From Macrostomum lignano (taxonomy: Eukaryota): 30,362 nucleotides of DNA. The notes under the pieces were generated by a model. It searched no databases, was not told the DNA's origin, and saw only the letters and a list, made by a program, of their open reading frames with translations. The stretch is taken from the NCBI GenBank assembly GCA_002269645.1, contig NIVC01003523.1, positions 1-30,362 on the forward strand, written 5' to 3'. A program made the translations under genes and the position numbers. Positions 946-26,439 of the stretch are shown one piece after another. Every line of letters starts with the position of its first letter. Position 1 is the stretch's first letter.

Positions 946-1045
946 ATTCCTCGAGCTGCTCCGCCTGCTGGCGCCGTTCAAGCAGTTCAACCGGTTGCGC
1001 GAATTCTCAGCAACCAGCTGCCGCCCGGGTTCCCGGTGAAGATCG
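946..1045 (+). CDS. ANKRD13C: ANKRD13C-like protein, penultimate coding exon, with an apparent 1-nt deletion at ~1004-1007
   Basis: Acceptor GCCAG|946 and donor 1045|GTGAG. Reads FLELLRLLAPFKQFNRLREF, then SNQLPPGFPVKI in a shifted frame. Matches the ANKRD13C motif APFKHFNKLREF...LPPGFPVK as I recall it. Confidence 0.85.
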
Positions 1046-1200
1046 GTGAGCTTCGCTTTGGTGACAGTGCGGCACCATAGGCGGCCATGCCTACTTGCAG
1101 TAGTATAAGTGCTGTGGGATGCAGTCTTGCAGTTTTTTGCTAGTGATTTGCAATTGGATATGAGCAGTGCAGAGGTAATACCAAATAATGAATATATAAA

Positions 1201-2201
1201 TATGAGCAAGCTATAAGTAGGTGGCATGGCCTTTATGAGCAGGTTAAAATAGGCATAACCATTATGAGCAGGCTATCAGTAGGTATGACCATTATGAGCA
1301 GGCTATCAGTAGGCATGACATTTATGAGCAGGCTATAATTATACATGACCATTATCAGTAGGCTATAAATAGGCATGACCATTATGAGCAGGCTGTCAGA
1401 AGGCATAACCATTATGAGCATTCTATCAGTAGGCATGACCATTATGAGCAGGCTATCAGTAGGCATGACAATTATGAGCAGGCTATAACTATACATGACC
1501 ATTATGAGCAGATAATAAGTAGGCATGACCATTATGAGAAGGCTATCAGTAGGCATGACCATTATGAGCAGGCTATCAGTAGGCATGACCATTATGAGCA
1601 GGCTATCAGTAGGCATGACCATTATGAGAAGGCTATCAGTAGGCATGACCATTATGAGCAGGCTATCAGTAGGCATGACCATTATGAGCAGGCTATCAGT
1701 AGGCATGACCATTATGAGCAGGCTATCAGTAGGCATGACCATTATGAGCAGGCTATCAGTAGGCATGACCATTATGAGCAGGCTATCAGTAGGCATGACC
1801 ATTATGAGCAGGCTATCAGTAGGCATGACCATTATGAGCAGGCTATAATTATACATGACCATTATGAGCAGATTATAAGTAGGCATGACCATTATGAGCA
1901 GATTACAAGTAGACATGACCATTATGAGCAGGCTATCAGTAGGCATGACCATTATGAGCAGGCTATCAGTAGGCATGGCCATTATGAGCAGGCTATCAGT
2001 AGGCATGACCATTATGAGCAGTCTATCAGTAGGCATGACCATTATGAGCAGGCTATCAGTAGGCATGACCATTATGAGCAGGCTATAATTATACATGACC
2101 ATTATGAGCAGATTATAAGTAGGCATGACCATTATGAGCAGATTACAAGTAGACATGACCATTATGAGCAGGCTATCAGTAGGCATGACCATTATGAGCA
2201 G
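1201..2201. repeat. 30-bp minisatellite (ATTATGAGCAGGCTATCAGTAGGCATGACC), ~32 copies, filling intron 1046-2235
   Basis: Exact 30-bp period visible line to line. It generates the spurious LLIMVMPTDS and MTIMSRLSVG ORFs. Confidence 0.98.
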
Positions 2202-2235
2202 AACCAAGCCAGCAGCCTCGCACACCCGCCCACAG

Positions 2236-2369
2236 AGATGCCGGTCTATCCCACCATCACGGCCCAGGTGAGCTTCCGCCACTACGAGCTGCGCACCGAC
2301 CTCGCCGACTCGCTGTTCACCATCCCGGAGGGCTTCAAGCACAGCCGGCGCCGGTTCCCCAACTTGTGA
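2236..2369 (+). CDS. ANKRD13C: ANKRD13C-like protein, terminal coding exon
   Basis: Acceptor CACAG|2236, phase 1, compatible with the donor at 1045. Gives EMPVYPTITAQVSFRHYELRTDLADSLFTIPEGFKHSRRRFPNL*, matching the ANKRD13C C-terminus (IPVFPTITATVTF...IFTIPDDY...RFPDL*) as I recall it. Confidence 0.88.
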
Positions 2370-2513
2370 CGGGACCTGGGGGACGCGGCCCTCCTGCTGC
2401 CGCTGACCGCGCCGCTGGTGGCCGAGGCTGACGACGGCGGCCACCTGCTGTGCGTCGACCTGCCGCTGTCCAATGTCGGCGAGTCCGGGCCCGTCCTCCG
2501 AGTGGAACTCTGA
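2370..2513 (+). other. Candidate stop-codon-readthrough extension of ANKRD13C (47 aa: RDLGDAALLLPLTAPLVAEADDGGHLLCVDLPLSNVGESGPVLRVEL*)
   Basis: In frame with the TGA at 2367-2369. 43 of 47 codons end in G/C. Context is TGA-CGG. Next stop is TGA 2511-2513. Confidence 0.5.
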
Positions 2514-2534
2514 TGTCCTTGATAGAATGCTGCA

Positions 2535-2952
2535 TTGAGTCCTTTGATGTGTGCCACCCCGCTGCTACCTGAATCCTTTGATGTGTGCCGCCCCCGCTGC
2601 TATCTGAATCCTTTGATGTGTGCCGCCCCCGCTGCTATCTGAATCCTTTGATGTGTGCCGCCCCGCTGCTATCTGAATCCTTTGATGTGTGCCACCCCCG
2701 CTGCTATCTGAATCCTTTGATGTGTGCCACCCCCGCTGCTATCTGAATCCTTTGATGTGTGCCGCCCCGCTGCTATCTGAATCCTTTGATGTGTGCCGCC
2801 CCGCTGCTATCTGAATCCTTTGATGTGTGCCACCCCCGCTGCTATCTGAATCCTTTGATGTGTGCCGCCCCGCTGCTATCTGAATCCTTTGATGTGTGCC
2901 GCCCCCGCTGCTATCTGAATCCTTTGATGTGTGCCACCCCCGCTGCTATCTG
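2535..2952. repeat. 34-35-bp minisatellite (CTGAATCCTTTGATGTGTGCCGCCCC(C)GCTGCTAT), ~12 copies
   Basis: Periods of 35, 35 and 34 measured at 2569/2604/2639/2673. Starts ~20 bp after the TGA at 2513. Confidence 0.97.
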
Positions 2953-3687
2953 ATCACAGAATGTCCGGTATTGTTCAATCTACTCTAGAGAGCGGATTAT
3001 TTTTTATTTTTACGAAACCAATTTTAGTTTTAAAGTTTTAAAAGTGCTTATCGTGATGTTTTTACTGCTTATTTTAATCGAAAGCTGAATTGAAATTTTA
3101 GTTGTAGTTTAAAACTAATTGCTTACTCTCGATGATGAGGATTATCATGATGTTGTTAATTGGTGACCCAACCAGAGTGCCGGAGCAGTGCGCCTGCACC
3201 TGTACAATATCCGGGTCCATTGGTTTGCCTCTTGCCTCATTTTCTATTCGAACTGCCACTCAGCTTGCGGTATCCCAGTTGTCTCAGGTAGTGAGATGCA
3301 GCACCCCACATTGTTGGCCAATATTTGAAGGCCGATTTTTGCAAATTTGCACGCAACGAAAATGGAAAACTGACGACAGCAGCCCGGAACTGTCAAATTT
3401 TCTAAACCAGTCGCTCGCGCCCCAGTGGCTTTTTTTGCAACTTCTGAGCGGTCAGCATTGATGATTTTGTACAAATTCAATGGAATAATTCACTGTTCAC
3501 ACTTACAAGCACCAGTGCTTTGAACCAACTGGCATATCTGTGTCCATTGTGATCTGCTTTCTATTCAGCACTGGACTTTGGCTTTTCAAATACACAAGAT
3601 TCTAATAAATTTTGTCTGGCTTTTGATTTTTTATCCAAATAGATAGTCAGAGATGCGACTCCTGTTTTTGTAACAATTTATGAATTC

Positions 3688-4742
3688 CTGGGGGCAGCAC
3701 ACACTGAGGCCTGAAGCACTGGGGGCAGCACACACTGAGGCCTGAAGCACTGGGGGCAGCACACACTGAGGCCTGAAGCACTGGGGGCAGCACACACTGA
3801 GGCCTGAAGCACTGGGGCAGCACACACTGAGGCCTGAAGCACTGGAGGGGCAGCACACACTGAGGCCTGAAGCACTGGGGGGGCAGCACACACTGAGGCC
3901 TGAAGCACTGGGGGCAGCACACACTGAGGCCTGAAGCACTGGGGGCAGCACACACTGAGGCCTGAAGCACTGGGGGCAGCACACACTGAGGCCTGAAAAA
4001 CTGGGGGCAGCACACACTGAGGCCTGAAGCACTGGGGGCAGCACACATTGAGGCCTGAAGCACTGGGGGCAGCACACATTGAGGCCTGAAGCACTGGAGG
4101 GGCAGCACACACTGAGGCCTGAAGCACTGGGGGGCAGCACACACAGGCCTGAAGCACTGGGGCAGCACACACTGAGGCCTGAAGCACTGGGGCAGCACAC
4201 ACTGAGGCCTGAAGCACTGGGGGCAGCACACACTGAGCCTGAAGCACTGGGGGCAGCACACACTGAGGCCTGAAGCACTGGGGGGCAGCACACACTGAGG
4301 CCTGAAGCACTGGGGCAGCACACACTGAGCCTGAAGCACTGGGGCAGCACACACTGAGGCCTGAAGCACTGGGGGCAGAACACACTGAGGCCTGAAGCAC
4401 TGGGGGGCAGAACACACTAAGGCCTGAAGCACTGGGGGCAGAACACACTGAGGCCTGAAGCACTTGGGAGCAGCACACACTGAGGCCTGAAGCACTGGGG
4501 CAGCACACACTGAGGCCTGAAGCACTGGGGGGGGGCAGCACACACTGAGGCCTAAAGCACTGAGGGCAGCACACACTGAGGCCTGAAGCACTGAGGGCAG
4601 CACACACTGAGGCCTGAAGCACTGGGGGGGGGGCAGCACACACTGAGGCCTGAAGCACTGGGGGGCAGCACACACAGGCCTGAAGCACTGGAGCAGCACA
4701 CACTGAGCCTGAAGCACTGGGGGCAGCACACACTGAGGCCTG
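3688..4742. repeat. ~31-bp minisatellite (GCAGCACACACTGAGGCCTGAAGCACTGGGG, variable G-run), ~34 copies
   Basis: Period 31 at 3694/3725/3756. Source of the spurious CCPQCFRPQC ORFs. Confidence 0.98.
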
Positions 4743-4832
4743 GAGGTCTTCTGGCACTAACCACTCTGCATGAATGAGGTCAAAAAACATAAAAATAGCT
4801 CTTAAACCGCTTCAGCCCTTTCCACATCCCGG

Positions 4833-5534
4833 ATGTCCGCACCGGAGCCATTGGCCGGCCGCAGCGCCGCCGACCTCAGGCGAGGCGGAGCCAGCGAGGC
4901 GGAGCGCCGGCTGCTCACCTACGCGGCGGAGTTCATCGAGCTGCTGCTGCACCAGCTGCTGCGCCGGCACCGGGTGTACCCGACTGGCGCCTTCCAGCTG
5001 CGCCAGCGCTACGGCTTGCCCGTGTGGCAGTGCGCGCACCCCCGGGTCGCCGAGTACACCGCCGCCGTGGCCAGCACCTTCGAGTTGTGCGCTGGCGCCG
5101 TCGACCGACTGCGGGTGACGTTCCGGCCCTGCCGCCCAGATCGTCGGGCAGTTCGCTACTGCCTGCTGGTGCGGCTGCGGCCTCAACGGTTCGAGGACAA
5201 CGCGGACGCCTGTCTGCGGCTGGAGGCCCAGCTGGCCCGGCTGCTGCTGTGCGCGCTGGGGCCGCCGCAGTGCAGGGAAGCCGCCGCGGAGCCGGCTGAC
5301 GGAGCCGAGGAATCAGCTGAGTGGAGCGTGGAATTCGTTGCTAAGGAACCGCTGGAGGGACTCGCGAGTCCGCACTTCCCCATCGGCCGGGTCGGCTGCG
5401 AGGACGGCGGCGAGCGAGAGACATTCGGCGACGGCGCCCGCAGTCGATTGGCGCCGATGGGTAGCGCCGTGGCGCCGTTTCTGGGCCTGGATCTCGCTTT
5501 GGAGGAGCTGCCTGAGGATGCTGGGGAGGCGTAG
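4833..5534 (+). CDS. MAD2L2: REV7/MAD2L2-like HORMA-domain protein (233 aa, intronless)
   Basis: ATG to TAG with high GC3. EFIELLLHQLLRRHRVYPTGAFQLRQRYGLPVWQCAHPRVAEY matches the REV7 HORMA N-terminus ([43 protein letters not shown]). The C-terminal FP...RLAPMGSAVAPFLGLDLALEE aligns to the safety-belt region. Confidence 0.85.
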   Translation: MSAPEPLAGRSAADLRRGGASEAERRLLTYAAEFIELLLHQLLRRHRVYPTGAFQLRQRYGLPVWQCAHPRVAEYTAAVASTFELCAGAVDRLRVTFRPCRPDRRAVRYCLLVRLRPQRFEDNADACLRLEAQLARLLLCALGPPQCREAAAEPADGAEESAEWSVEFVAKEPLEGLASPHFPIGRVGCEDGGERETFGDGARSRLAPMGSAVAPFLGLDLALEELPEDAGEA

Positions 5535-5690: not shown

Positions 5691-5974
5691 ACTCAGCTGC
5701 CCAGTGTTTCTACAAAGCTGAAATTTGTGCTCATTTTTACTTCCAGTTTGAACCGTTGCATTTTTGTAAATACAAACTGCGCGCTGTGATCTGCGGTGAA
5801 AATGTTATTAAAAAATAAAAACTTTTCTTTTTGCTGAGCTTTGAATAGTTAATCTTTATTATTTATATAGCCAGGGCATCCTAAATATTTCTTGCTAAAG
5901 TTGCCGAAGTGATTCAGAGTAACGGTTTAATGGGGTCGAGTTTAATGTGGGGGTAAATTCTGGTTTAATTGGGT

Positions 5975-7388
5975 TGTGAAGTCGGGTTTAATGGGGCTGT
6001 GAAGTCGGGTTTAATGGGGCTGTGAAGTCGGGTTTAATGGGGCTGTGAAGTCGGGTTTAATGGGGCTGTGAAGTAGGGTTTAATGGGGCTGTGAAGTAGG
6101 GTTTAATGGGCTGTGAAGTCGGGTTTAATGGGGCTGTGAAGTCGGGTTTAATGGGGCTGTGAAGTCGGGTTTAATGGGGCTGTGAAGTCTGGTTTAATGT
6201 GGCTGTGAAGTCGGGTTTAATGGGGCTGTGAAGTCGGGTTTAATGGGGCTGTGAAGTCGGGTTTAATGGGGCTGTGAAGTCGGGTTTAATGGGGCTGTGA
6301 AGTCGGGTTTAATGGGGCTGTGAAGTCGGGTTTAATGGGGCTGTGAAGTCGGGTTTAATGGGGCTGTGAAGTCTGGTTTAATGTGGCTGTGAAGTCGGGT
6401 TTAATGGGGCTGTGAAGTCGGGTTTAATGGGGCTGTGAAGTCGGGTTTAATGGGGCTGTGAAGTCGGGTTTAATGGGGCTGTGAAGTCTGGTTTAATGGG
6501 GCTGTGAAGTCTGGTTTAATGGGGCTGTGAAGTCTGGTTTAATGGGGCTGTGAAGTCTGGTTTAATGGGGCTGTGAAGTCGGGTTAAATGGGGCTGTGAA
6601 GTCTGGTTTAATGGGGCTGTGAAGTCTGGTTTAATGGGGCTGTGAAGTAGGGTTTAATGGGGCTGTGAAGTCGGGTTTAATGGGGATGTGAAGTCGGGTT
6701 TAATGGGGCTGTGAAGTCGGGTTTAATGGGGCTGTGAAGTCGGATTTTATGGGGCTGTGAAGTCTGGTTTAATGGGGCTGTGAAGTCGGGTTTAATGGGG
6801 CTGTGAAGTCTGGTTTAATGTGGCTGTGAAGTCGGGTTTAATGGGGCTGTGAAGTCGGGTTTAATGGGGCTGTGAAGTCGGGTTTAATGGGGCTGTGAAG
6901 TAGGGTTTAATGGGGCTGTGAAGTCTGGTTTAATGGGGCTGTGAAGTCTGGTTTAATGGGGCTGTGAAGTCTGGTTTAATGGGGCTGTGAAGTCTGGTTT
7001 AATGGGGCTGTGAAGTCGGGTTAAATGGGGCTGTGAAGTCTGGTTTAATGGGGCTGTGAAGTCTGGTTTAATGGGGCTGTGAAGTAGGGTTTAATGGGGC
7101 TGTGAAGTCTGGTTTAATGGGGCTGTAAAGTCGGGTTTAATGGGGCTGTGAAGTCGGGTTTAATGGGGCTGTGAAGTAGGGTTTAATGGGGCTGTGAAGT
7201 CGGGTTTAATGGGGCTGTGAAGTAGGGTTTAATGGGGCTGTGAAGTAGGGTTTAATGGGGCTGTGAAGTAGGGTTTAATGGGGCTGTGAAGTCTGGTTTA
7301 ATGGGGCTGTGAAGTAGGGTTTAATGGGGCTGTGAAGTCTGGTTTAATGGGGCTGTAAAGTCGGGTTTAATGGGGCTGTGAAGTCGGC
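5975..7388. repeat. 23-bp G-rich minisatellite (GGGTTTAATGGGGCTGTGAAGTC), ~61 copies
   Basis: Near-perfect 23-bp period with GTC/GTA/TCT unit variants. Confidence 0.98.
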
Positions 7389-8306: not shown

Positions 8307-10339
8307 TCAAGCCTGCTGGCACCAGCTGTCCAGCAGCGTGAACTCGCTCTGCGTGAGCACTCGAGTGCTCAGGCCAAAACATGAGATGCTGCCCCGCACA
8401 GAGTAGCTCGAATCTCCGGGGAAGCCTCCCAGATGCAGGCATTGGAAATTGGCACTGCTGAGACCGCCGACCTCCTCCGTCTTGTTCAGGGTGGCGGCGC
8501 GCGCGTTGCCGTTGAAGTAGAAGCCGGAGGCAGCTGTCGAGTTGAAGGAGACCCCAGCAGCAATGGAAGCCGCGGAGCTGTTCGAACTTGCATTAAACGC
8601 GGCGTCAGACCTAAACAGGCGGGATATCGAAGCGACTGGCCAGAACACTTGGTGCCAAATCTTTCCATCGTACGCGAAGAAGTCGTGAGAGACGTTGTTG
8701 CTGGTGCACTGCCGAAACACGGCATACGTGGCGCTGCGGTTCAGAGGTGACTTGCGTGCGATTGTCGGCTAAATGAACAGCGAACTGTTTCAGACTTTTA
8801 GAAAATTATACTCACTCGATGTTCAGCGGGTGCTTGGCCCGGACGAAGAAGGAGAACTTGTTGCCTTCGTTGACCACCGTCTCGAAGCCGGGCGTCTCCG
8901 CCATCAGGAAGGAGTCCAGGCTCTGCACAAAGTGCGCGCCAGAGGCGTTCACCGTGGCGTTGCCGCTACTCAGCCGGTACTTGGAGGGATCGGCGACGTT
9001 CTCGAGGCCGTGGCTGGCGAACCTGTAGAGCAGCTTGAGGCACAGCTGGCCCACAATCGGGTCCACGGATGACGGCACTGGAATGGTTTGATGATGGTCA
9101 GTAGGGCGATTGTGAAAATGATTTATGAGTTGCTGACAAGACCGAAACGAGATGTCAACTTAAGCACGTTAATCCATCAATCCGTAATGGGGAGGAATGC
9201 CCTTCCTGCCTCTCCGGTGTCGATAATGCGGAGCACTTCATATGTGACTGCCTCGCCTTTACTCTGGACAGGCTCACCTACCTCAGCCCAAACCCGGACC
9301 TCTCCGACATTTTCAGGCCCGAGTATCTCTACCAGCTCGTCCGCGACCTAAGAGCTACCGGCGGGCGAGCGGCCATCCACCTGGACTCTGGAGGAAGACC
9401 GCGCTGCGGACACCGGCACCACCGGATCTCCCCTCGCGACAACGTAACACCAGCTGCCCGTGGTCACCAGGGGTTAGCCAATGGGTGGAGACACCTTCCA
9501 GCTGTATCCGGAACCCCCTGCAGCTGGGTCAAGTAAGTCACGGGAATCCATTGGTTCACAGGGGATATAGGGGATAAAACTGGGATTTCACCCCAACTTA
9601 AACCTAGAACGGAGCCCAACGAAAAGTTTCAAACTAAAGCGCCTTCAACCGGAACCCCTGCATCCCTGGAAGCCCCTTGTGAGGGATCTGGATGAGAGGT
9701 CACGGCGTTTCTAATCGACTGTTCCGAAGAAATGATCGAATGCAGTCCGTCTGGTCCAGGGGCCCAACTTCACAAGAAAAAAATAACAAAACATCGAAAA
9801 AATATTATCGGGTCTTTTGCAAGACCGAAGCATTGGAAAACCCTCATCAACAACAAGCGCTACCAGCCTGATTGATGAATCCTTTACCCATTCTGAGTAC
9901 TTGGCATCCGCAAAAATGTATGACCAGCCAACTGCCTTTTCATGTAAACAGTCTTTCAATCTGACCAAGCGGTTTTCGGTCTTGCATGTATGATATCTCG
10001 GTCCTTATGGATAAGCGACCCCCACGTCACGCACAGCCTCGCACCTTGTCTATACGACTCGCAGGCTCCATCGCTCCACAGCGCCAGTCCCTCGCACGTG
10101 GAGTTGCCATGGTAACAGAGACCGGCTGACCGGTTGAAGTGGAACAGGTCGCAGTCCGGCCTGCTGCTGCACGCAGCGCCGCAGCGAATTTTCGACTTCT
10201 CGGCTCGGGCGGGCAGCGCGGAGAGCCGCGGGCACAGGGCGGTCGCTTTGAACTGCTTGACTGTGGAGAGGCCGGGGCAGCCCTGCAGCAGCTGCAGGAG
10301 AACGACGCAGAACAGAAGGAGCTCGCGGTGGGGGCTCAT
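8307..10339 (-). CDS. Secreted PAN/apple + LamG/ConA-like protein, copy 1 (327 aa; exons 10339-10045, 9077-8816, 8733-8307)
   Basis: Signal-peptide-like MSPHRELLLFCVVLLQLLQGCPG. Apple-type CGAACSSRPDCDLFHFNRSAGLC. C-terminal CLHLGG...GSISCFGLSTRVLTQSEF is LamG/pentraxin-like. GT-AG introns of phase 1 and 2; exons of 295+262+427 nt join in frame. Confidence 0.8.
9140..9715 (+). mobile_element. 5'-truncated non-LTR retrotransposon 3' end (C-terminal CCHC finger plus likely 3' UTR) in intron 1 of copy 1
   Basis: The frame not shown in the ORF track reads ECPSCLSGVDNAEHFICDCLAFTLDRLTYL (C-x2-C-x8-H-x4-C at 9198-9251), typical of I/Jockey-group ORF2 ends. The right boundary is approximate. Confidence 0.7.
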
Positions 10340-10725
10340 GGCAAGGGATGTTGCAAGCAGCGGGGAGAATTGGAGACGGGGAGGCTGGATGCTTTTTATG
10401 CATCTTCGGACTCCCAACTCAGCCAATGACCACCTGGATGAATAATTCACACAGTCTCCGAGAAATTTGCGAGCCATTGTGTTTGTCAGCGATGGAGGAA
10501 ATGCTGGGCTGCGCGGACTTGGAGCAGAAACTGAGGCAGGCCCGCTAATGAGCAAGCAAGCCGTGGGTTGGCAGGCTTGACTAGAAAAGCTAAAAATTGT
10601 TACCTGTTAGAATCTGCAGCAGGTGCGTTGCCTGGTTTCTAAGATCTTCTCTCCGTCGCTAACGTCCTTAGACAGAAATTGCGTGCCAGAATTATGATAA
10701 ATGCTTCGTCATGTCTTAAAAACAT

Positions 10726-10810: not shown

Positions 10811-11102
10811 TTTTTATCATCTTTTTTGAGATCTTCAAACTCAACCAGTTGGTAGTGCTTCAATTGCAAGGACAGAAATGTCTGCAAGGAATGGTCGACC
10901 CTACTTGAAGTAGAAAAATGGTTTTCACTTTAAACACCAGAGACTGTGCTGTGGTCTTTCGTATACAATGGTTTCGTATACCAGCTGACTCGAATGACTG
11001 CTCATCATTGATACTTGAAAACATGTGGCACTTTTTCAAAACTGTTGTAATTGATACGGACCGTGCCCGTTCGTGCCCGTGTGCTGATGACAGAATAGAA
11101 CA

Positions 11103-11348
11103 TTGGGTTTCAGAAGACAATATTGGGTGTCAGAGACAAGTATTGGGTGTCAGAGACAAGTATTGGGTGTCCGAGACAAGTATTGGGTGTCCGAGACAAG
11201 TATTGGGTGTCAGAGACAAGTATTGGGTGTCCAAGACAAGGATTGGGTGTCCAAGACAAGGATTGGGTGTCAGAGACAAGTATTGGGTGTCAGAGACAAG
11301 TATTGGGTGTCAGAGACAAGGATTGGTTGTCAGAGACAAGTATTGGGT
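11103..11348. repeat. 20-bp minisatellite (GTATTGGGTGTCAGAGACAA), ~12 copies
   Basis: Exact 20-bp period. Confidence 0.96.
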
Positions 11349-11436
11349 AGTCAGAAGCACCACTTGGGATGCAGTACAGTGGCGGTACAAAAAAGAGGCC
11401 GATGCAAGCATGTCTGGAAGCCGCTGCTGCGGCGCG

Positions 11437-11883
11437 GGTGCATCAACAGCCTCATGGCGGGTGAATCAACAGCGTCATGGCGGGCCCGCGTGTGCATCAA
11501 CAGCATCATGGCGGGTGCATCAACAGCATCATATCGGGTGCATCAACAGCATCATATCGGGTGCATCAATAGCCTCATGGCGGGTGCATCAATAGCATCA
11601 TGGCGGGTGCATCAACAGCCTCATGGCGGGTGCATCAATAGCATCATATCGGGTGCATCAATAGCATCATGGCGGGTGCATCAATAGCATCATGGTGGGT
11701 GCATCAATAGCATCATGGCGGGTGCATCAATAGCATCATGGCGGGTGCATCAATAGCATCATATCGGGTGCATCAATAGCATCATGGCGGGTGCATCAAC
11801 AGCATCATGGCGGGTGCATCAATAGCATCATATCGGGTGCATCAATAGCATCATGGCGGGTGAATCAACAGCCTCATGGCGGT
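11437..11883. repeat. 23-bp minisatellite (GTGCATCAATAGCATCATGGCGG), ~19 copies
   Basis: Period 23 (11584/11607). Confidence 0.95.
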
Positions 11884-12787
11884 GTGCCATATCAGATGTA
11901 CTGTCTCGCAATTCTGAGCTCTCACCCTCCATCAAGCGCAGCTGCTTGCGCTAACCTTGTGAGTCAGTTAAGTGCGTCAACTTCGCTTGCCAGCATGCCT
12001 TGTCAAATAGTTAGACCGGCAGTTGAGTCTTTGTTTGCTTCAGCAGAGGTTTATTGGGTATAAGATTGAGGGAAATTCTGCAGGTTGTTTGAGCTGATTG
12101 ACAGGTTTCAGAGTTGCAGGATTTCGCTCGCATTCAGCAGTGCTGCAGCCATAAAAATGTTCAAGCAAGAAAAATAATTTTCTAGAAAAATGTTTTCACG
12201 ACAGTTGACACAATTGTGCCGGAGCGCACCTGGGATTTGGATTTGCAGCTGTGGAGTCTTATTATCGATCGGAAGTGTTCCTAAAGATACAGAATGTCAA
12301 TTTCAAGAGACGCTGTAACTGGGCGGCTCCTGCGCTCGGGCTGGGGTATATCTGGCGCTTGACCCCTGAATGTACAATAATTCCCTCGTTATGCCCCTAT
12401 CATTCCCCCTGTGGCGTTGTCTCATTCCCCTGCTTTCCCCTGTGCCCCTGATACTGAGTTATGCCGCTTATATTAATACATATTTCCTTCTGTCAACTAT
12501 AGTAGGGAGAGGACGCTCTCCCTTTTCTCCCCCTTAACATATTTGCGCCACCAGCTACACCGCCACATCGTTTATTCTCTTTCGCGGCCAATTTCCATTT
12601 AGTATTTTTTATCAGAGGCGGGGGCTGTGTACCCCCCTGAGGCACTTTAAGTGACATTGTCACACAATCGGCGAGAGACATTACCGCCCATTCCGCCGGC
12701 TCCCCTGAGCAGGCACACAAGCGCGCGGATAAATGCGTAGTCATACGCACAGGCACACACTCGCACAGGAGTGCACATCGGCCATAA

Positions 12788-13152: not shown

Positions 13153-13905
13153 TGCAGACCAGTACACACCTAAACTATAGACCAGTACACAGCTAAACTG
13201 CAGACAAGTACACACCTCAACTGCAGACCAGTACACAGCTAAACTGCAGACCAGTACACACCTCAACTGCAGACCAGTACACAGCTAAACTGCAGACCAG
13301 TACACACCTCAACTGCAGACCAGTACACACCTCAACTGCAGACCAGTACACACTTCAACTGCAGACCAGTACACACCTCAACTGCAGACCAGTACACACC
13401 TCAACTACAGACCAGTACACACCTCAACTGCAGACCAGTACACACCTCAACTGCAGACCAGTACACACCTCAACTGCAGACCAGTACACACCTCAACTGC
13501 AGACCAGTACACACCTCAACTGCAGACCAGTACACACCTCAACTGCAGACCAGTACACACCTCAACTACAGACCAGTACACACCTCAACTGCAGACCAGT
13601 ACACACCTCAACTGCGGACCAGTACACACCTCAACTGCAGACCAGTACACACCTCAACTGCAGACCAGTACACACCTCAACTGCGGACCAGTACACACCT
13701 CAACTGCAGACCAGTACACACCTCAACTGCAGACCAGTACACACCTCAACTGCAGACCAGTACACACCTCAACTACAGACCAATACACAGCTACACTGCA
13801 GACCAGTACACAGCCAGAGTAAAGACCAGTACACAGCCAGAGTAAAGACCAATACACAGCCAGAGTAAAGACCAGTACACAGCTAAACTGCAGATCAGTA
13901 CACAG
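13153..13905. repeat. 23-bp minisatellite (CAGACCAGTACACACCTCAACTG), ~32 copies
   Basis: Period 23 (13201/13224), degenerate at both ends. Confidence 0.97.
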
Positions 13906-14209
13906 CCAACTGCTCCAACTCAGTCTGCTCGCATCTACAGAACCTGAGTTATTGAGATGAGCAGCGCCAGTAAAATAAGCTGAAATTCAGAGTCGCGGTT
14001 AGCATTTGAATTTTTGGGATGCTCGAGGAAAAAGGGCCAGCTGGCGTTGTTTATTCGTGTCTGTCTCAGACCGGGACTTGCGTCAGGGATCAGTTTGTCA
14101 AGTCTGTCAGATAAACCTCTTGAATGAAGGATTTGCGCTGTTATTCAATCTTCAGGTGCGATCAGATTCTCAGTTCAACTGCACTGCTGGCTTCCATGGG
14201 GCCGCCGCT

Positions 14210-15714
14210 TCAAACCCGCTGGCACCAGCTGTCCAGCAGCGCGAACTCGGACTGGTTGAGCACTCGAGTGCTCAGACAGAAGCAGGAGATGCTGCCCTGG
14301 ATGGAGTATCCGCTGACAGGGAAGCCCCCAAGCTGCAGGCATTGGAAATTCGCAGTGCTGAGGTCGGACTTCGAGTTTGTTTTATCCAGACTGGCAGCGC
14401 GGCTGCTCCCGTTGAAGAAGAAGCTAACGGCCCGGTCCGTGTCGTAGGAGACCCCGATAGAGACCAGGGCGACCGAGCTGCTCTTGTTGTACACGGTGCC
14501 GGAATTGTAGCGGTAGGATTTTTCGTCAGCGGGCCAGTACACCTCATGCCAGATTTCTCCTTCGTGAGTGTACAAGTCGTGAGCCACGGATGTCCAGGAT
14601 GTCCCGGTGCAGTGCCGGAATGCTGCGTAGGTGCCGCTGCAATTAAAAGAGGGTTTGGAACTCTCAGCCCCATTCGCACAAAGGTCTCACTGCGGTGCAC
14701 AGGATCTGGGACTCTCAGCCCCATTCGCACAAAGGTCTCACTGCGGTGCACAGGATCTGGGACTCTCAGCCCCATTCGCACAAAGGTCTCACTGCGGTGC
14801 ACAGGATCTGGGACTCTCAGCCCCATTCGCACAAAGGTCTCACTGCGGTGCACAGGATCTGGGACTCTCAGCCCCATTCGCACAAAGGTCTCACTGCGGT
14901 GCACAGGATCTGGGACTCTCAGCCCCATTCGCACAAAGGTCTCACTGCGGTGCACAGGATCTGGAACTCTCAGCCCTATTTGAACAAAGGTCTCACTGCG
15001 GTGCACAATGACTCAGCAAGAACCCGAGCTCTGCTCGAACTTTCATTGCCTCAGAGGCGACTCACTCGATGTCCAGCGGGTGCTTGGCCCGGACGAAGAA
15101 GGAGAACTTGTTGCCCTTGTTGACCACCGTCTCGTAGCCGGGCGTCTCCGCCATCAGGAAGGAGTCCGGGCTCTGCACAAAGTGCGCACCAGAGGCGTTC
15201 ACCACCGTGGCGTTGCCGCTCCTCAGCCGGTGCTGGCACGGGTCGGCGACGTTCTCGAGGCCGTGGCTGGCGAACCTGTAGAGCAGCTTGAGGCCGAGTT
15301 GGCCCACAATGGGGTGCACGGAGGACTGCTCTGGAGTGGGTGGGTGGTCAGGGGGATTTGCAAGCATTCGGAAGGAACAGAGGAAATACAGCACCGGACT
15401 TCCGGCTCACGGAAGCTACCTGCGCTGTAGGAGTCGCAAGGTCCGTCGCTCCACAGCGCCAGTCCCTCACAGGTGGAGTTGCCATGGAAACAGAGACCGG
15501 CTGTCCGGTTGAAGTGGAACAGGTCGCAGTCCGGCCTGCTGCTGCACGCAGCGCCGCAGCGAATCTTCGACTTCTCGGCTCGGGCGGGCAGCGCGGAGAG
15601 CCGCGGGCACAGGGCGGTCGCTTTGAACTGCCGGCTGGTGGAGAGGCCGGGGCAGCCCCGCAGCAGCTGCAGGAGGACGGCGCAGCAGAGGAGGAGCTCG
15701 CGGTCGGGGCTCAT
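14210..15714 (-). CDS. Secreted PAN/apple + LamG/ConA-like protein, copy 2 (328 aa; exons 15714-15420, 15330-15066, 14636-14210)
   Basis: Paralog of copy 1 with identical intron positions and phases. Exons of 295+265+427 nt join in frame. Begins MSPDRELLLCCAVLLQLLRGCPG and ends FALLDSWCQRV*. Confidence 0.8.
14656..15007. repeat. 51-bp minisatellite, ~7 copies, within intron 2 of copy 2
   Basis: Period 51 (14701/14752). It produces the 17-aa repeat ORFs in the track. Confidence 0.97.
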
Positions 15715-16189
15715 GGCTGCGGCGCGGGCGGGCGGAGCGGCGAGTCTGCAGGCCTTTAAATCGGCTGCCGCCCAGCCAGTCAGCGCAGGATTTGCTTGAG
15801 GCCCGCCAACAGAAACTCTTCTGTGAGAGAAAAATTTTTTTGAATGGAAAATTTTCAATGGCAGTCAGGCAAACAGTTGCTAAGGAAAATGGGACTGCTC
15901 GAGCTTCAGTTTTCTACGAAGTAGAAGAGAATTGGGACACCTGTGGTATTGGTAATTTGACAGAAAGCCCCTTGAGATGGCTTTACTTGTTCAAACAGTT
16001 GACTTTGAAAAAGTGAAAAAGTGTGGGTTCAAACAAATATGTGGCAAATCACCAGTCTAGGAGAGGTTGCGTCTCAAAATTGGCTTGGCTTCAGAGCAAC
16101 AGATACTACTAGGTAACCTGGCCTAAGCCCAATGCGACGGCTCCTACAAGTTGAGTAAATTGTTCTGAGCTGGATTGGAGACTCATCTC

Positions 16190-16834: not shown

Positions 16835-17951
16835 ATGAGTGCCAGCCCCAAAGCGACTCAACGTGCGCCAACTCAAGGCTGAGCTGCGAAACAGAGGCCT
16901 GCCTACCACGGGCCGCAAACAACGGCTCGCCAAGCGCTTGTCTACTGCACTCGGCTTAGAGCAAGCTGACGAAGACTTCAACAACTCCGAGATGACTTCT
17001 TCTGCTCCGGACGCCGAGGCCGGCATCGGCAGCGCGGGCGAGGCGCCTCCGGGGGCGGGAGCGACCGGCTGGCGGCGCTGCGGCAGAAGGCGGAGCTGCT
17101 CGAACTGCAAGTCCTGGGAGGCCGTGGTCGGGATCTTCAGCAACGGCTTCACACTCAGCAGCGCTTGACGGCTCAGCTCCAGCCAGCATAATCATCAGGT
17201 GAGCAAAACGCACATACGCTCGTACCAGTCTGCAGTTGCCCGAGGTTTTTGAATCTGGGATGAGGGAGGCGGCTCAGCTTCAGGCCAGGCTTCGACTCGC
17301 AAGTTGCATTTGATCAGAGACCACATCAAGCTAGCCAGAGGACCCGGCTCAGCCGGTCAGGAGCACTGGTCGCCACAATGGAGAATGGCTCCCTCACATT
17401 CAGAAAGCAAGAGCCGAAGCTGTCCAGTATCTCTGCTGGTCAGTGGATCGCGGCCAATTCGGTCATCCTGCAAAAGCTGATCAAGGAGAAACTCCCGGCG
17501 GCTGCTGGAAAGCACTGATGGTCTCCTGACTGACGTCCTTGGCTACCTGGACTACAATCGCAAGATTGGAGAGCTGCTGGCTGCTGACTACCCGGGGTCC
17601 GTAATCTGGGAGTTTGACGAGGACTACCGGAAGCTGGTGGCGGAGAAGGGCATGGCGTGGGGTGAGGAGCCCCCTCAGCTGTACCACAAGCACCTCAACT
17701 CACCCAGAAACCTGCGGTTAACGTTCGCTAAGCAGCCCAGCCAGCAGCAAATCCCGGCAGCAACCAGGCTGATCTGTCTGCGCTTCAACTCCGAGTCCGG
17801 ATGCACCCGCCAGAACTGCAAGTTCCGCCACGTCTGCAAAATCCAAGGCTGCCTGGCAGCGCATCCGGCTCACGCTCACACGCAGTCGCCGCAGTCATTA
17901 CTCACCGGACAGCTGCCGGGTCACGTGACCGGTGCGAGTGCAAAAAAATGA
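16835..17951 (+). pseudogene. Ngaro gag-like ORF1, frameshifted: N-terminal SAP-like domain, coiled coil, C-terminal Cys/His fingers
   Basis: KRLNVRQLKAELRNRGLPTTGRKQRLAKRL is SAP-like. Also QWIAANSVIL, WEFDEDYRK...AWG and CLRFNSESGCTRQNCKFRHVCKIQGCLAAHP. Several frameshifts. Confidence 0.8.
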
Positions 17952-19560
17952 CGCCATTTTATCCAGCTGACTGCTCTGTTTTTAATTCCGAATATTCTGC
18001 TTTTACTTCTTCGCTGCCCATCTCGTCTGATCTGCAACCTGACGCCTGGAGTGCTCTGCTCAGCGACGACCCAGACCACGACTTTCTGATGCAAGGCGTT
18101 GTCAACGGTTTCGCTCTCACCAATGCTGGCCAACCGCCTTTGACTTCGTCCAAGAACTACGCCTCCGCTCTGCTGCACCGCTCTGCTGTGGAAGCCCAGG
18201 TCGAGGAGGAGCTGCGCCTTGGAAGGTACATCTGGTGGAGCGGCCCGATCAAAGTCAACCCGATCGGCACCGTGCCCAAGTCCGACGGGCGGGTCTGCCT
18301 GATCCATGACCTGTCCTATCCGACCGGCCAGTCTGTCAACGACTGCTACGACCAGCAGAAGCACATCAAGTACTGCACTGTCCAGCAGCTGGTTCGTTAT
18401 CTCCTCCGGGACACTACATGGCCAAGGTCGATCTCAAAAGCGCCTACAGGTCCGCGCCAATCAGGCCTGCTGACTACGGGCTCGTCGGCCTCGCCTGGCG
18501 GTTTGACTCGGACAGCCAGGACAGTCTGCTCTGCAACACCAGGCTTCCATTCGGCGCCAAAGCTGCTTGCGAAGTTTTCCACCGTCTTTCAGCCGCCGTT
18601 ACCCGGAACATGCACCAGCTTGGCTTTTCTGCTACAATGAACCACCTGGATGACGGGGCAGTCGCTGGGAAATCCGAGTCCGAAGCTTTCGCTGCTTTCG
18701 ATTGCCTGCTGGACATCTTGCAGCGCCTCGGCTTTACCATCAACTGGGACAAGGTTGTCAGGCCTACGCAATGCATCGACTTCCTTGGCGTGCGCATCAA
18801 CACCGCTACCGGCACCAAGTCGCTGCCAGAGGAGAAGGCTCTCGAGACGACGAAGCTGCTGACTCAGACCTGCTCGGAGACTCGGGTGCACCTGCGCTCT
18901 GCTCAGAAGTTGATTGGCAAGCGTGGCTGGTTCTGTCAGATTGTCCCTCATGTCAGAGTCTTCCTGCGTCCGCTCTTCGACTGGCTGACAACTGCTGTTG
19001 ACTGCAAGCTTTGGGTGACCGATGAGACCCGCGCCAACCTGTCCTGGTGGCTCAGAGCCCTGGCTTGGCTCCCCTCGGTTGCTTTGTGGCCGCGCTTCGA
19101 CGAGGAGTTTGCCGTGGAGACTGACAGCAGCCGGTCAGGCGCAGATGGAGTGCCATCGACTGGGAGCTGGACTGCGGTGGTGTGTTCAGGGATGCCCATA
19201 TCAACTTCAAGGAGGCTCTGGCACCTTTGCTGATCATCTTGCACCGGCGCTCTCAGCTCAACAACTGCAAATTGTCATCTACACAGACAGCACCGCAGCG
19301 GCTGGCATGATCAATTGGCTGAGCTCTCGTGACCCACGGTTCCTGCAGGTGTACCAGACTGTGGCTCTGCTGCGCATCCGGAACAGCATCAGTTTGGAGA
19401 CCTTTCACCTGCCTGGTTGCATGCAGATTTTTGCTGATGCTGCCTCCCGTATGTTTGTCTCGCAGTCTGAGCTCATTAACTTTTGCTCCCGCTACTACCG
19501 TACGCTCGTGATCTGCCCGCTTGAGTTCACGTCGCACGCGCTCTCTGCCACTTCTCTATC
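17948..19560 (+). pseudogene. Ngaro reverse transcriptase / RNase H, frameshifted
   Basis: ATG 17948 overlaps the gag stop. RT motifs: PIGTVPKSDGRVCLIHDLSYP, MAKVDLKSAYR, RLPFG, HLDD (YLDD variant, 18643), DFLG. RNase H motifs: TDSS, HINFKEALA, TDS, ADAASR. Confidence 0.9.
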
Positions 19561-19599
19561 TTTTGCAGGTCGCCCTTCGGAGACGCCGCCCGCCCCCCG

Positions 19600-20330
19600 C
19601 GCTGTGTCCGCCGGACAGCTGTGCCGCCTCGGCCTGGTGGAGAACTCCTGGCGATCCTACCTCAGCCAGCTGCGCTCCTGGGAGGACTTCTGTGTTAGCG
19701 CAGGCCGCCCTTCATGTCCAGCTGACGGTGAGCTCCTCTGCCGCTACATCGCGCACCTGGTGAGCACCGGCTCCGGTCCCTCTTCAGCCTCCGAGCCTAC
19801 GTCCATGCCGTCTCTTTTCTGCACCAAGCCACCGGCGCCCCCGACCCAGCGAAAGACTTCACCGTGCAGCTGGCCCTCCGAGGCGCCAAACGTCATCTGG
19901 GCCTGCGATGCAAACAGGCAGGTGACCAGATGACCATCGAGCACCTCAAGAGAATCCATCAGCAGCTCCTGCGCTTCATCTCAAGCGCATATCTCCGGGC
20001 CACCTTCTGGGCGGCTTTTTTTGGTGGGCTGGTGGGGCATGTTGCGCCTTGGTGACTTCCTATCGGCCCGCGGCAACACGCTCTGTCTCGCGGGACTGCC
20101 TGTCGGCTTCATCTGGCTGCTGGAAGTTGGCAGTCCCAAAGTCCAAGACCAACCAGTTCGGCCACAGCATCCAGGGGGGGGGTGCCAGCTTCTGCCATCA
20201 AATCGGCTTGTCAGAATCGGACATTCGGGCCCTTTGAGGCTGGAGATCGGGCCCTTTGAGGCTGGAGATCGGACGCTGTTCTCCTCTTCTTTTCCGCCAG
20301 CTCTACGCTGTCGCGCCGCCAGCGCTCCGC
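19600..20330 (+). pseudogene. Ngaro tyrosine recombinase, internally deleted and catalytically degenerate
   Basis: SYLSQLRSWEDFC, LRLGD, KSKTNQF, GHSIQGGGASFCHQIGLSESDIRAL*GWRSDAV. A 22-bp duplication lies at 20225/20247. Confidence 0.82.
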
Positions 20331-24925: not shown

Positions 24926-25470
24926 GCCTCTGCCCCCCCGGCCCAGTCAGCCCTCTGCCCTCCCCCCCCCCCCAGTCAGGCCTCTGCTGCCCCCCCCCAG
25001 TGAGGCCTCTGCTGCCCCCCCAGTCAGGCCTCTGCTGCCCCCCAAGTCAGGCCTCTGCTGCCTTCCCAGTCAGGCCTCTGCCGCACCCCCAGTCAGGCCC
25101 CTGCCGCACCCCCAGTCAGGCCTCTGCCGCACCCCCTGTCAGGCCTCTGCTGCCTTCCCAGTCAGGCCTCTGCTGCCTTCCCAGTCAGGCCTCTGCCGCA
25201 CCCCCAGTCAGGCCTCTGCCGCACCCCCAGTCAGGCCTCTGCCGCACCCCCAGTAAGGCCTCTGCCGCACCCCCCTGTCAGGCCTCTGCTGCCCCCCCCC
25301 CCCTGTCAGGCCTCTGCTGCCCCCCCTGTCAGGCCTCTGCTGCCCCTCCTGTCAGGCCTCTGCTGCCCCCCTGTCAGGCCTCTGCTGCCCCCCCTGTCAG
25401 GCCTCTGCCCCTCCCCAGTCAGGCCTTCCCCTCCCCAGTCAGGCCTTCCACCCCCTTTGTCAGGCCTCTG
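24925..25470. repeat. ~21-24-bp minisatellite (CCCCCAGTCAGGCCTCTGCTG, variable C-run), ~24 copies
   Basis: Tandem GTCAGGCCTCTGC units. It truncates the Gypsy relic and is the source of the spurious Pro-rich ORF. Confidence 0.95.
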
Positions 25471-26439
25471 CACTACATATCGTGCAGATTGTGGTTGATT
25501 TTCAGAATTCAGACGCAAAAAACGCAAAATATACTACTATCTGAAAAATGAAGTAAGTAGTATACGAAAACGGTATCCTAGGCGTGATATGGCAATATGT
25601 AGTCGTAATAATCCATGTGCTCATATATGTACATTAATTCCATGTTCAATAATCCCTATCTATCTCAAATTGGATATGTACATTAATTCCATGTACATTA
25701 ATCCCTATCTCAAATGTCCATGTCTATTCCCAATTCTATATGTACACTTACATTAATCTACAGTGTCATCCCCAGACGGCCAGCGCGCGCGCACCAAAAT
25801 TACAACTCGAAACCCTACTACATGTACAGTTGTACAATCTCATCCAAATGAGTCAACTAATTGTGTAGCCTACAACGTAAATGTATATTTCCAATGTACA
25901 TTTCTCAGACAGATTTGAATAATACTGGTCGGAGTCTATATGTACATCGATAGCCTCTATACTCATATCCGCTACATACCCCAAAAATTAGGTATGTACA
26001 TTTTCACCCTCGGAGACTGTAGGTTTGAATATGCTGATAATTTATTCAAAATCACTTATAAAATACACATACTTTCATATAGAGGCGGGCCTGTACAAAC
26101 TCTCGCCAAGCGATGGGGTGGAGGTTGCGTCATCCAAGCCTCTCCCCAAGTCAGACCCCAAATGCAGGACTGTGTTGAAGCAGTGCTTTATATTTCTATA
26201 TTGACAGTGTGGATGATACAAGACCTTTAATTGGTAATTATCAACTGCTACTGCTTTACGGTATATCCTCACCCCTCGAAGCCCCTATACTGAATGTTGA
26301 ATCACCCTTTAACTCGGACCATAGTCAAATTCAACCCTGTTCGAAAACAGCCACCCCTCCGATGTTCACCAGACACAGCGCAGACCCCATAACAAATCGA
26401 GCTAAATTTTAACACTCGCCCCTGTTTTCTCTGTCCCCC

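Follow-up and report, generated by a model that had tools for sequence, protein, structure and literature searches.

The stop codon of the ANKRD13C gene is a UGA that is ancestral to the gene and probably leaky, and the 47 codons that follow it in frame are likely to form a conserved readthrough extension, which would give an isoform with a C-terminal motif of its own. The gene was recognised in a stretch of Macrostomum lignano DNA of 30,362 nucleotides, the whole of which is referred to here as the window. The 47 codons are considered protein-coding because purifying selection acts on the extension behind the leaky TGA in about eight animal lineages, that of the window included, the number of lineages being an estimate from sequence divergence. 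The comparisons described below support the addition of ANKRD13C to the readthrough genes, where it appears to have been previously unreported, and they indicate that the extension is an old feature of ANKRD13C and not one peculiar to this genome. A link between ANKRD13C and readthrough was looked for in the literature outside supplementary gene lists, and nothing relevant was found. ANKRD13C has been reported to act as an ER-associated chaperone of G protein-coupled receptors (GPCRs). If the interpretation is correct, the protein has a regulated second isoform, and its synthesis depends on a readthrough context that needs neither a CUAG motif nor a downstream structure.

The gene and its post-stop frame in the window

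The window is eukaryotic. Its exons are short and very rich in G+C, with long arrays of minisatellites between them, and an ANKRD13C orthologue contributes its final two coding exons on the + strand. The C-terminal part of the ANKRD13_C domain (PF11904) is matched in Pfam with E = 5.7e-17, and the pattern with which ANKRD13C orthologues end in the alignments, ...F.IP..Y.ED..RFPDL, is followed by the window as well. The features of the locus are as follows.

946..1047, + strand: penultimate ANKRD13C coding exon, FLELLRLLAPFKQFNRLREF..LPPGFPVKI
945/946 and 1047/1048, + strand: borders of the penultimate exon as predicted from the sequence, acceptor cag/A and donor ATCG/gtgag
1007..1017, + strand: 11-nt spacer between the REF and LPPGFPV codons, TCAGCAACCAG; 12 nt in orthologues
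2236..2366, + strand: coding portion of the final ANKRD13C exon, (E)MPVYPTITAQVSF...SRRRFPNL, with TTG at 2364-2366 as the last sense codon
2367..2369, + strand: first stop, TGA, with +4 C at 2370; ancestral ANKRD13C stop and proposed readthrough site
2370..2510, + strand: candidate 47-codon readthrough extension, RDLGDAALLLPLTAPLVAEADDGGHLLCVDLPLSNVGESGPVLRVEL, based on periodicity and on homology to post-stop ORFs elsewhere
2417..2445, + strand: inverted repeat GGTGGCCG/CGGCCACC within the extension, 48 nt past the stop; not supported as a readthrough element
2445..2510, + strand: conserved C-terminal motif of the extension, LLCVDLPLSNVGESGPVLRVEL, aligning without gaps to ...LVGLDVPLTNLGNSSAEMTLIF-stop of other species
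2511..2525, + strand: second stop, TGA at 2511-2513, with further in-frame TGA at 2520-2522 and TAG at 2523-2525; translation ...VLRVEL-stop-CP-stop-stop
2529..2953, + strand: 3' UTR minisatellite, 35-bp unit, 12 copies; marks the end of coding-like sequence
3604..3609, + strand: candidate poly(A) signal for ANKRD13C, AATAAA, the first on this strand past the stop; its function is putative
Peptide expected to mark the extended form: ...DLPLSNVGESGPVLR

The last exon runs through ...RFPNL into TTG TGA CGG at 2364-2372. The original prediction had described 47 in-frame sense codons past the TGA, 43 of them ending in G or C, with the coding-like sequence closed by a second TGA shortly before a minisatellite, and all of this is present in frame with the upstream ANKRD13C coding sequence. 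It had overlooked the two extra in-frame stops past the second stop, together with a 1-nt deletion in the upstream exon that is considered below. Within the extension, G+C is found at codon positions 1/2/3 in 42/20/43 of the 47 codons (0.89/0.43/0.91), the values for the upstream exon being 0.59/0.48/0.93. The heterogeneity of G+C among codon positions was measured by chi-square across the 30 kb, in each 141-nt stretch. Of all of these the extension has the strongest 3-periodicity, with a chi-square of 37.8, a value reached by 3e-5 of the stretches, and the remaining stretches at 80% or more of this chi-square are all recognisable coding exons or ORFs. Tandem Repeats Finder (TRF) detects no triplet repeat in the extension. 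The codon TTG is rare in the window, accounting for 2 of 23 leucine codons, and one of these two is the gene's final sense codon. The placement of a rare TTG right at the stop points to a constraint at the nucleotide level on the bases adjoining it.

As assembled, the gene is frameshifted. Exactly four residues separate REF from LPPGFPV in 65/65 orthologous matches, and the 11 nt found between them in the window thus represent a 1-nt deletion, beyond which the frame is closed by a TGA at 1036-1038. Neither the normal C-terminus nor the extension could be produced from such a copy, unless the missing base reflects faulty assembly or polymorphism. The locus could be a copy or allele of ANKRD13C that was disabled recently and whose extension was inherited from a functional readthrough gene and is no longer translated here, and the comparison contains a single sequence of this species, with no close relatives beside it. 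We regard this as unlikely, although it deserves to be kept in mind. Codon bias shows no decay on either side of the deletion, nor in the last exon or the extension, the splice sites are intact, no further lesion is found, and a deletion of one base is typical of assembly errors. With the codon bias intact on both sides, three origins are left for the missing base: faulty assembly, polymorphism, or a disabling mutation of very recent date. Disablement would in any case concern only the copy in the window, leaving the conservation of the extension across the family untouched, and the family-level conclusion is unaffected by the deletion.

The window also contains other sequences of note. Minisatellites are unusually dense, with units of 20-51 bp in up to 63 copies, and occupy introns, 3' UTR and intergenic DNA (14-856, 1201-2201, 2529-2953, 3688-4742, 5935-7387, 11102-11887, 13153-13913, 14656-15007 and 24967-25471). 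A strong positive GC skew at 5935-7387 is due to the array at that place. Just downstream of ANKRD13C lies an intron-less ORF of 233 codons (4833-5534, + strand), residues 30-139 of which resemble REV7/MAD2B (MAD2L2; PDB 5o8k_A, E = 2.2e-7). Pfam HORMA has no match in this ORF, an exact look-up of its 233-aa product returned no record elsewhere, and it may be a diverged retrocopy. Two tandem paralogous genes with signal-peptide-like starts are located on the - strand at 8307-10555 and 14210-15858. In both, a PAN/apple-like match is weak and lies below the Pfam cut-off (E = 0.0025 and 0.0055), with additional exons of strong periodicity after it. A retroelement remnant at 16839-19933 (+ strand) harbors a SAP domain (E = 3.6e-9) and an RVT_1 reverse transcriptase (E = 5.8e-8). 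Its long ORFs at 17801-18640, 18418-19233 and 19022-19933 overlap in three different frames, and the element is therefore probably frameshifted.

The extension in other animal lineages

The protein indexes that were searched hold almost no animal proteomes. A 126-aa composite of the last exons and the extension, compared with an index of 5.8 billion proteins, retrieved two ANKRD13-like proteins, both distant, and nothing from vertebrates. Metagenome contigs were therefore scanned, and the orthologues described here come from animal DNA within metagenome contigs and Logan assemblies. The scan used a probe alignment of four sequences, namely the C-terminus of the window gene, two distant matches and a human ANKRD13C C-terminus, which served as a probe only. 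The locus L015 is 100% identical to this probe sequence over "DIPVFPTITATVTFQEFRYD", and L036 is also close to it. In total, 80 loci of animal DNA were found in metagenomes.

The original prediction held that ANKRD13C orthologues end at about RFPDL and that the TGA of the window is an ancestral stop, not a nonsense mutation. Both statements are borne out. Of the 21 loci that reach the gene's end, around 18 have exactly RFPDL-stop, the same picture is obtained over 63 loci, and orthologues stop after RFPDL whether or not they carry an extension. Because most orthologues terminate exactly at RFPDL-stop, the TGA of the window is taken as the ancestral stop.

An open post-stop frame of 47-323 codons is found in 12 sequences besides the window, and homology links these frames to one another and to that of the window. 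Together with a shared C-terminal motif and a TGA at the first stop in all 13, they argue for the readthrough reading that had been proposed from the window alone. Representative stop contexts and extensions are as follows.

L028: TGA-CAC, 47 codons, HFLELTFIHILTSQRCLGYDESSRPLVGLDVPLTNLGNSSAEMTLIF-stop
L025: TGA-CAT, 47 codons
L062: TGA-TAT, 50 codons
L017: TGA-CTC, 78 codons
L008: TGA-CTG, 51 codons
L003: TGA-CAA, 323 codons, starting QYMELFTIHIICSLR and ending FLCLDLPLTNFGFYSEEVIILF-stop, on an intron-free contig

The extension is bipartite. In the lineages other than that of the window, an N-terminal motif, x[FY][LM]EL[TF][FT]I[HS]I[LI][TC]S.R, follows directly after the stop. The C-terminal motif, D-[LIV]-P-[LM]-T-N-[LF]-G...[EQ]M.L.F-stop, lies at the second stop, as in most sequences, or within a few codons of it, and the linker that joins the two motifs is of very variable length. 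When the window is included, the C-terminal motif becomes [hydrophobic]-D-[LIV]-P-[LM]-[TS]-N-[LFV]-G with a hydrophobic end. A profile of this motif, built from the non-window sequences only, was compared with 1208 six-frame pieces of the window, and 2370-2510 was the sole significant match (E = 3.3e-4, the next being 1.5). The link between the window and the family consists of a 22-residue motif worth around 13-16 bits. The same profile has no match in the loci without an extension. No match in the window was obtained with a profile of the other species' N-terminal motif. The C-terminal motif is kept in the window, the N-terminal half of the extension there having diverged.

A profile of the extension, when compared with the protein index, yielded seven more proteins, all of the form ...RFPDL-W-extension. 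The contigs of these additional proteins (L081-L088) have a TGA at the position after RFPDL in every case, and the proteins with a tryptophan at this place (P0006-P0011, contigs L081-L087) have arisen because gene callers read TGA as Trp. The gene call of P0008 runs through the second TGA too. An alternative genetic code in which TGA truly specifies Trp was rejected on the evidence of L003. In this contig the 254 upstream codons include none that is TGA, Trp is written TGG, and the extension itself terminates at TGA.

Selection on the extension is clearest in the closest pair, L025 and L028. The 141 nt of their extensions differ at 20 positions, distributed 1/1/18 over the three codon positions, corresponding to 17.5 synonymous and 2.5 non-synonymous differences and a pN/pS of 0.047. 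The 40-44 codons that precede the stop give 0.045-0.050 in the same pair, a value equal to that of the extension. Six further pairs give a pN/pS of 0.2-0.5, at a synonymous divergence that is near-saturated. The synonymous-biased conservation that the original prediction had proposed to look for in alignments of orthologous 3' regions is thus present, with pN/pS between 0.05 and 0.5 over the closest pair and the six others, and it ends at the second stop. Nucleotide identity is 0.69-0.86 in the extension and 0.81-0.85 in the coding sequence, and falls to 0.20-0.55 in the 150 nt past the second stop.

The extension is not found throughout the family. It appears to be absent from the jawed-vertebrate-like orthologues that were recovered (L015 and L036, n = 2), and insect-like orthologues from termite-gut contigs lack it and end earlier, at ...EDPTR-stop. 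Two further loci carry a TGA after RFPDL. In L014 (357-476) it is followed as TGA-CGC by a 38-codon open frame ending ...SRIF, and in L007 as TGA-CGG by 9 open codons only. No recognisable C-terminal motif is present in either post-stop region, and these may be degenerate or independently evolving extensions.

At the protein level, no homologue of the extension outside ANKRD13C was found among 1.8 billion representatives. The phmmer matches that did arise, to an NLR with RI-type LRRs, a multi-Ig protein and a DUF protein, were rejected because LRR and Ig assignments contradict each other and the E-values are inflated by the summing of repeats, each worth some 22 bits. Pfam provides no coverage of the extension, the ANKRD13_C match stopping before the stop codon. 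An AlphaFold2 model of P0009, comprising the last exon and the extension and based on a seven-sequence alignment, has a mean pLDDT of 39.5, too low for the model to be informative. The two short, hydrophobic, strand-like motifs and the very variable linker would suggest a small module or a docking peptide. As a guess, the extension might add to the ANKRD13_C domain a short module that forms a strand or binds a partner.

Stop context and proposed decoding of the UGA

The sequences with an extension share a characteristic stop context. The first stop is TGA in 13/13, the window included, the +4 base is C in 11/13 and T in 2/13, and the last sense codon is TTR (TTG or TTA) in 13/13, versus 4/24 of the distinct orthologues without an extension. 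Those 24 orthologues terminate with TAG (14), TAA (6) or TGA (4), and their last leucine codon is CTN in 20/24. The association is significant by Fisher's test, with p = 6.7e-7, or p = 4.7e-5 when the extension-bearing set is counted as 8 lineages, which partly removes phylogenetic dependence. Further 3', the bases vary, with CGG in the window and CAC, CAT, CTC, CAA, CTG or TAT elsewhere, and CUAG follows the UGA in 0/13 sequences (UGA-CGGG in the window). The UGA-CGG context to which the original prediction had drawn attention is therefore conserved as far as the UGA and, largely, the +4 C, but not in its CGG.

The 8-bp stem that had been noted downstream of the stop exists at 2417-2424/2438-2445, but it is not conserved in 6 other species, nor does it form an unusually stable structure. 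In the window, the first 120 nt past the stop fold with z = -0.31, a 154-nt fold has z = -2.6, and there is no stem-loop at the usual distance of around 8 nt. The 120-nt post-stop folds of seven species share no helix and have z between -1.35 and +0.98. A hairpin, GGUGGGAC...GUCCCGCU, is formed over the LVGLDVPLT codons of L028 (2228-2255) and L025 (10493-10520), with one G-C pair changed to G-U between them. It was not seen in the other lineages.

Some ribosomes would decode the UGA at 2367-2369, in its context UUG-UGA-C, by means of a near-cognate tRNA. They would then continue for 47 codons to the UGA at 2511-2513, and the product would be a C-terminally extended isoform ending in the conserved motif. 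We infer near-cognate readthrough as the mechanism, and likewise its efficiency and the function of the extension. The efficiency may be low because there is no UGA-CUAG and no conserved downstream RNA structure.

Two other ways of passing the UGA can be weighed against near-cognate readthrough. In the first, the UGA would encode selenocysteine, the long form would be the sole product, and ANKRD13C would be a selenoprotein. The invariance of the UGA, 13/13, is what would be expected of a selenocysteine codon. However, no SECIS element or relevant Rfam family was detected, either in the window (at the gathering score, and at E <= 10 for 2200-4800) or in the related loci (at the gathering score, and at E <= 5 for six of them). 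Orthologues without the extension have a stop at the UGA position and never Cys, there is no Cys or redox motif near the site, and the +4 C and the UUR codon fit leaky termination. It is thus very improbable that ANKRD13C is a selenoprotein.

In the second, equally improbable, the stop would be removed at the RNA level, either through A-to-I editing that turns UGA into UGG or through alternative splicing. Both routes would yield an in-frame extended protein, and the splice alternative raised in the original prediction does have its cryptic donor CAG/GTGAG (2265-2272), from which a junction between 2268 and an acceptor at 2426 is in frame. ADAR disfavours an A that is preceded by G, so that editing would favour UAG over UGA, and no stable duplex is found around the stop. 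The splice route is contradicted by the periodicity, whose start at 2370 precedes the proposed acceptor by 57 nt, and by the N-terminal motif of the other species, which opens with the first post-stop codon. In several species the sequence is TTA-TGA, with no GT for a donor, and the intron-free L003 keeps the TGA.

The reading of the frame as a product of chance or composition, be it a 3' UTR rich in G+C, a decayed triplet repeat, an antisense exon or an inserted gene fragment, is refuted in practice: 47-codon open frames are common at 74% G+C and the antisense frame is also open and about equally periodic (G+C 0.91/0.43/0.89), but the periodicity is an extreme outlier that starts at the first post-stop codon, tandem repeats are lacking, homologues of the sense translation occur in the post-stop ORFs of species whose base composition is quite different, and an inserted fragment is opposed by the lack of any homologue outside ANKRD13C, the LRR and Ig matches being repeat-inflated artefacts. 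Both the antisense exon and the decayed triplet repeat were accordingly rejected.

With translational readthrough of the UGA as the preferred explanation, the family as a whole suggests an evolutionary history, which we hold to be somewhat better than an even bet. The ANKRD13C extension would be among the phylogenetically deepest of readthrough-encoded modules, bipartite and predating the vertebrates. A UUR-UGA-C context would have kept it in the window and in several invertebrate lineages, and it would have been lost along with the UGA in jawed vertebrates, insects, and annelid-like and cnidarian-like lineages. The family would in this way provide a natural experiment, in which the extension is kept with UUR-UGA-(C/U) and its loss is accompanied by drift to TAG, TAA and CTN codons. 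It would open the way to the study of a new readthrough context, of a conserved C-terminal peptide on a trafficking or chaperone protein, and of why jawed vertebrates lost the long isoform. There is also a consequence for annotation, in that pipelines truncate ANKRD13C, and some metagenome gene callers arrived at the long form only by treating TGA as Trp.

Comparison with known readthrough systems

To our knowledge, the cellular readthrough events known outside the insects are few, and those established in vertebrates amount to only a handful. The insect readthrough genes reportedly identified by Jungreis et al. in 2011 were recognised through synonymous-biased post-stop ORFs that extend to the next stop, with an enrichment of UGA-C. 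The extension of ANKRD13C is detected by the same comparative coding signature. Unlike the insect set, however, it is found in other animal lineages, and the insect-like orthologues are without it.

The type II viral readthrough signal, as found in alphaviruses and tobraviruses, consists of UGA-CGG or UGA-CUA. The window has exactly UGA-CGG, yet the CGG is not conserved among the ANKRD13C orthologues, and there is no stem-loop at around 8 nt. In the structure-stimulated type of readthrough represented by MuLV and alphaviruses, a stable and conserved structure lies a few nucleotides 3' of the stop, and ANKRD13C differs from this type in that none was found in the seven species folded.

The readthrough extensions of LDHB and MDH1 carry a peroxisomal targeting signal. 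As in these enzymes, the ANKRD13C extension would present a short C-terminal motif that is exposed only in the readthrough isoform, with a function that is putative here. The C-termini LIF, LLF, MFP and VEL are, in contrast to those of LDHB and MDH1, not PTS1-like.

In the vertebrate genes OPRL1, OPRK1, AQP4 and MAPK10, readthrough occurs at UGA-CUAG (Loughran et al. 2014, PMC4132726). A UGA with a C after it is a weak stop, the known vertebrate readthrough genes always have UGA, and the extension of MAPK10 is conserved back to lampreys (PMC4132726). ANKRD13C differs from these genes in that CUAG does not occur in its set, the conserved nucleotides being a 5' UUR and the +4 C, and in that its extension is bipartite with a very variable linker. 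In other respects it resembles them, sharing the UGA stop, the coding signature, the concentration of conservation near the C-terminus and a deep phylogeny.
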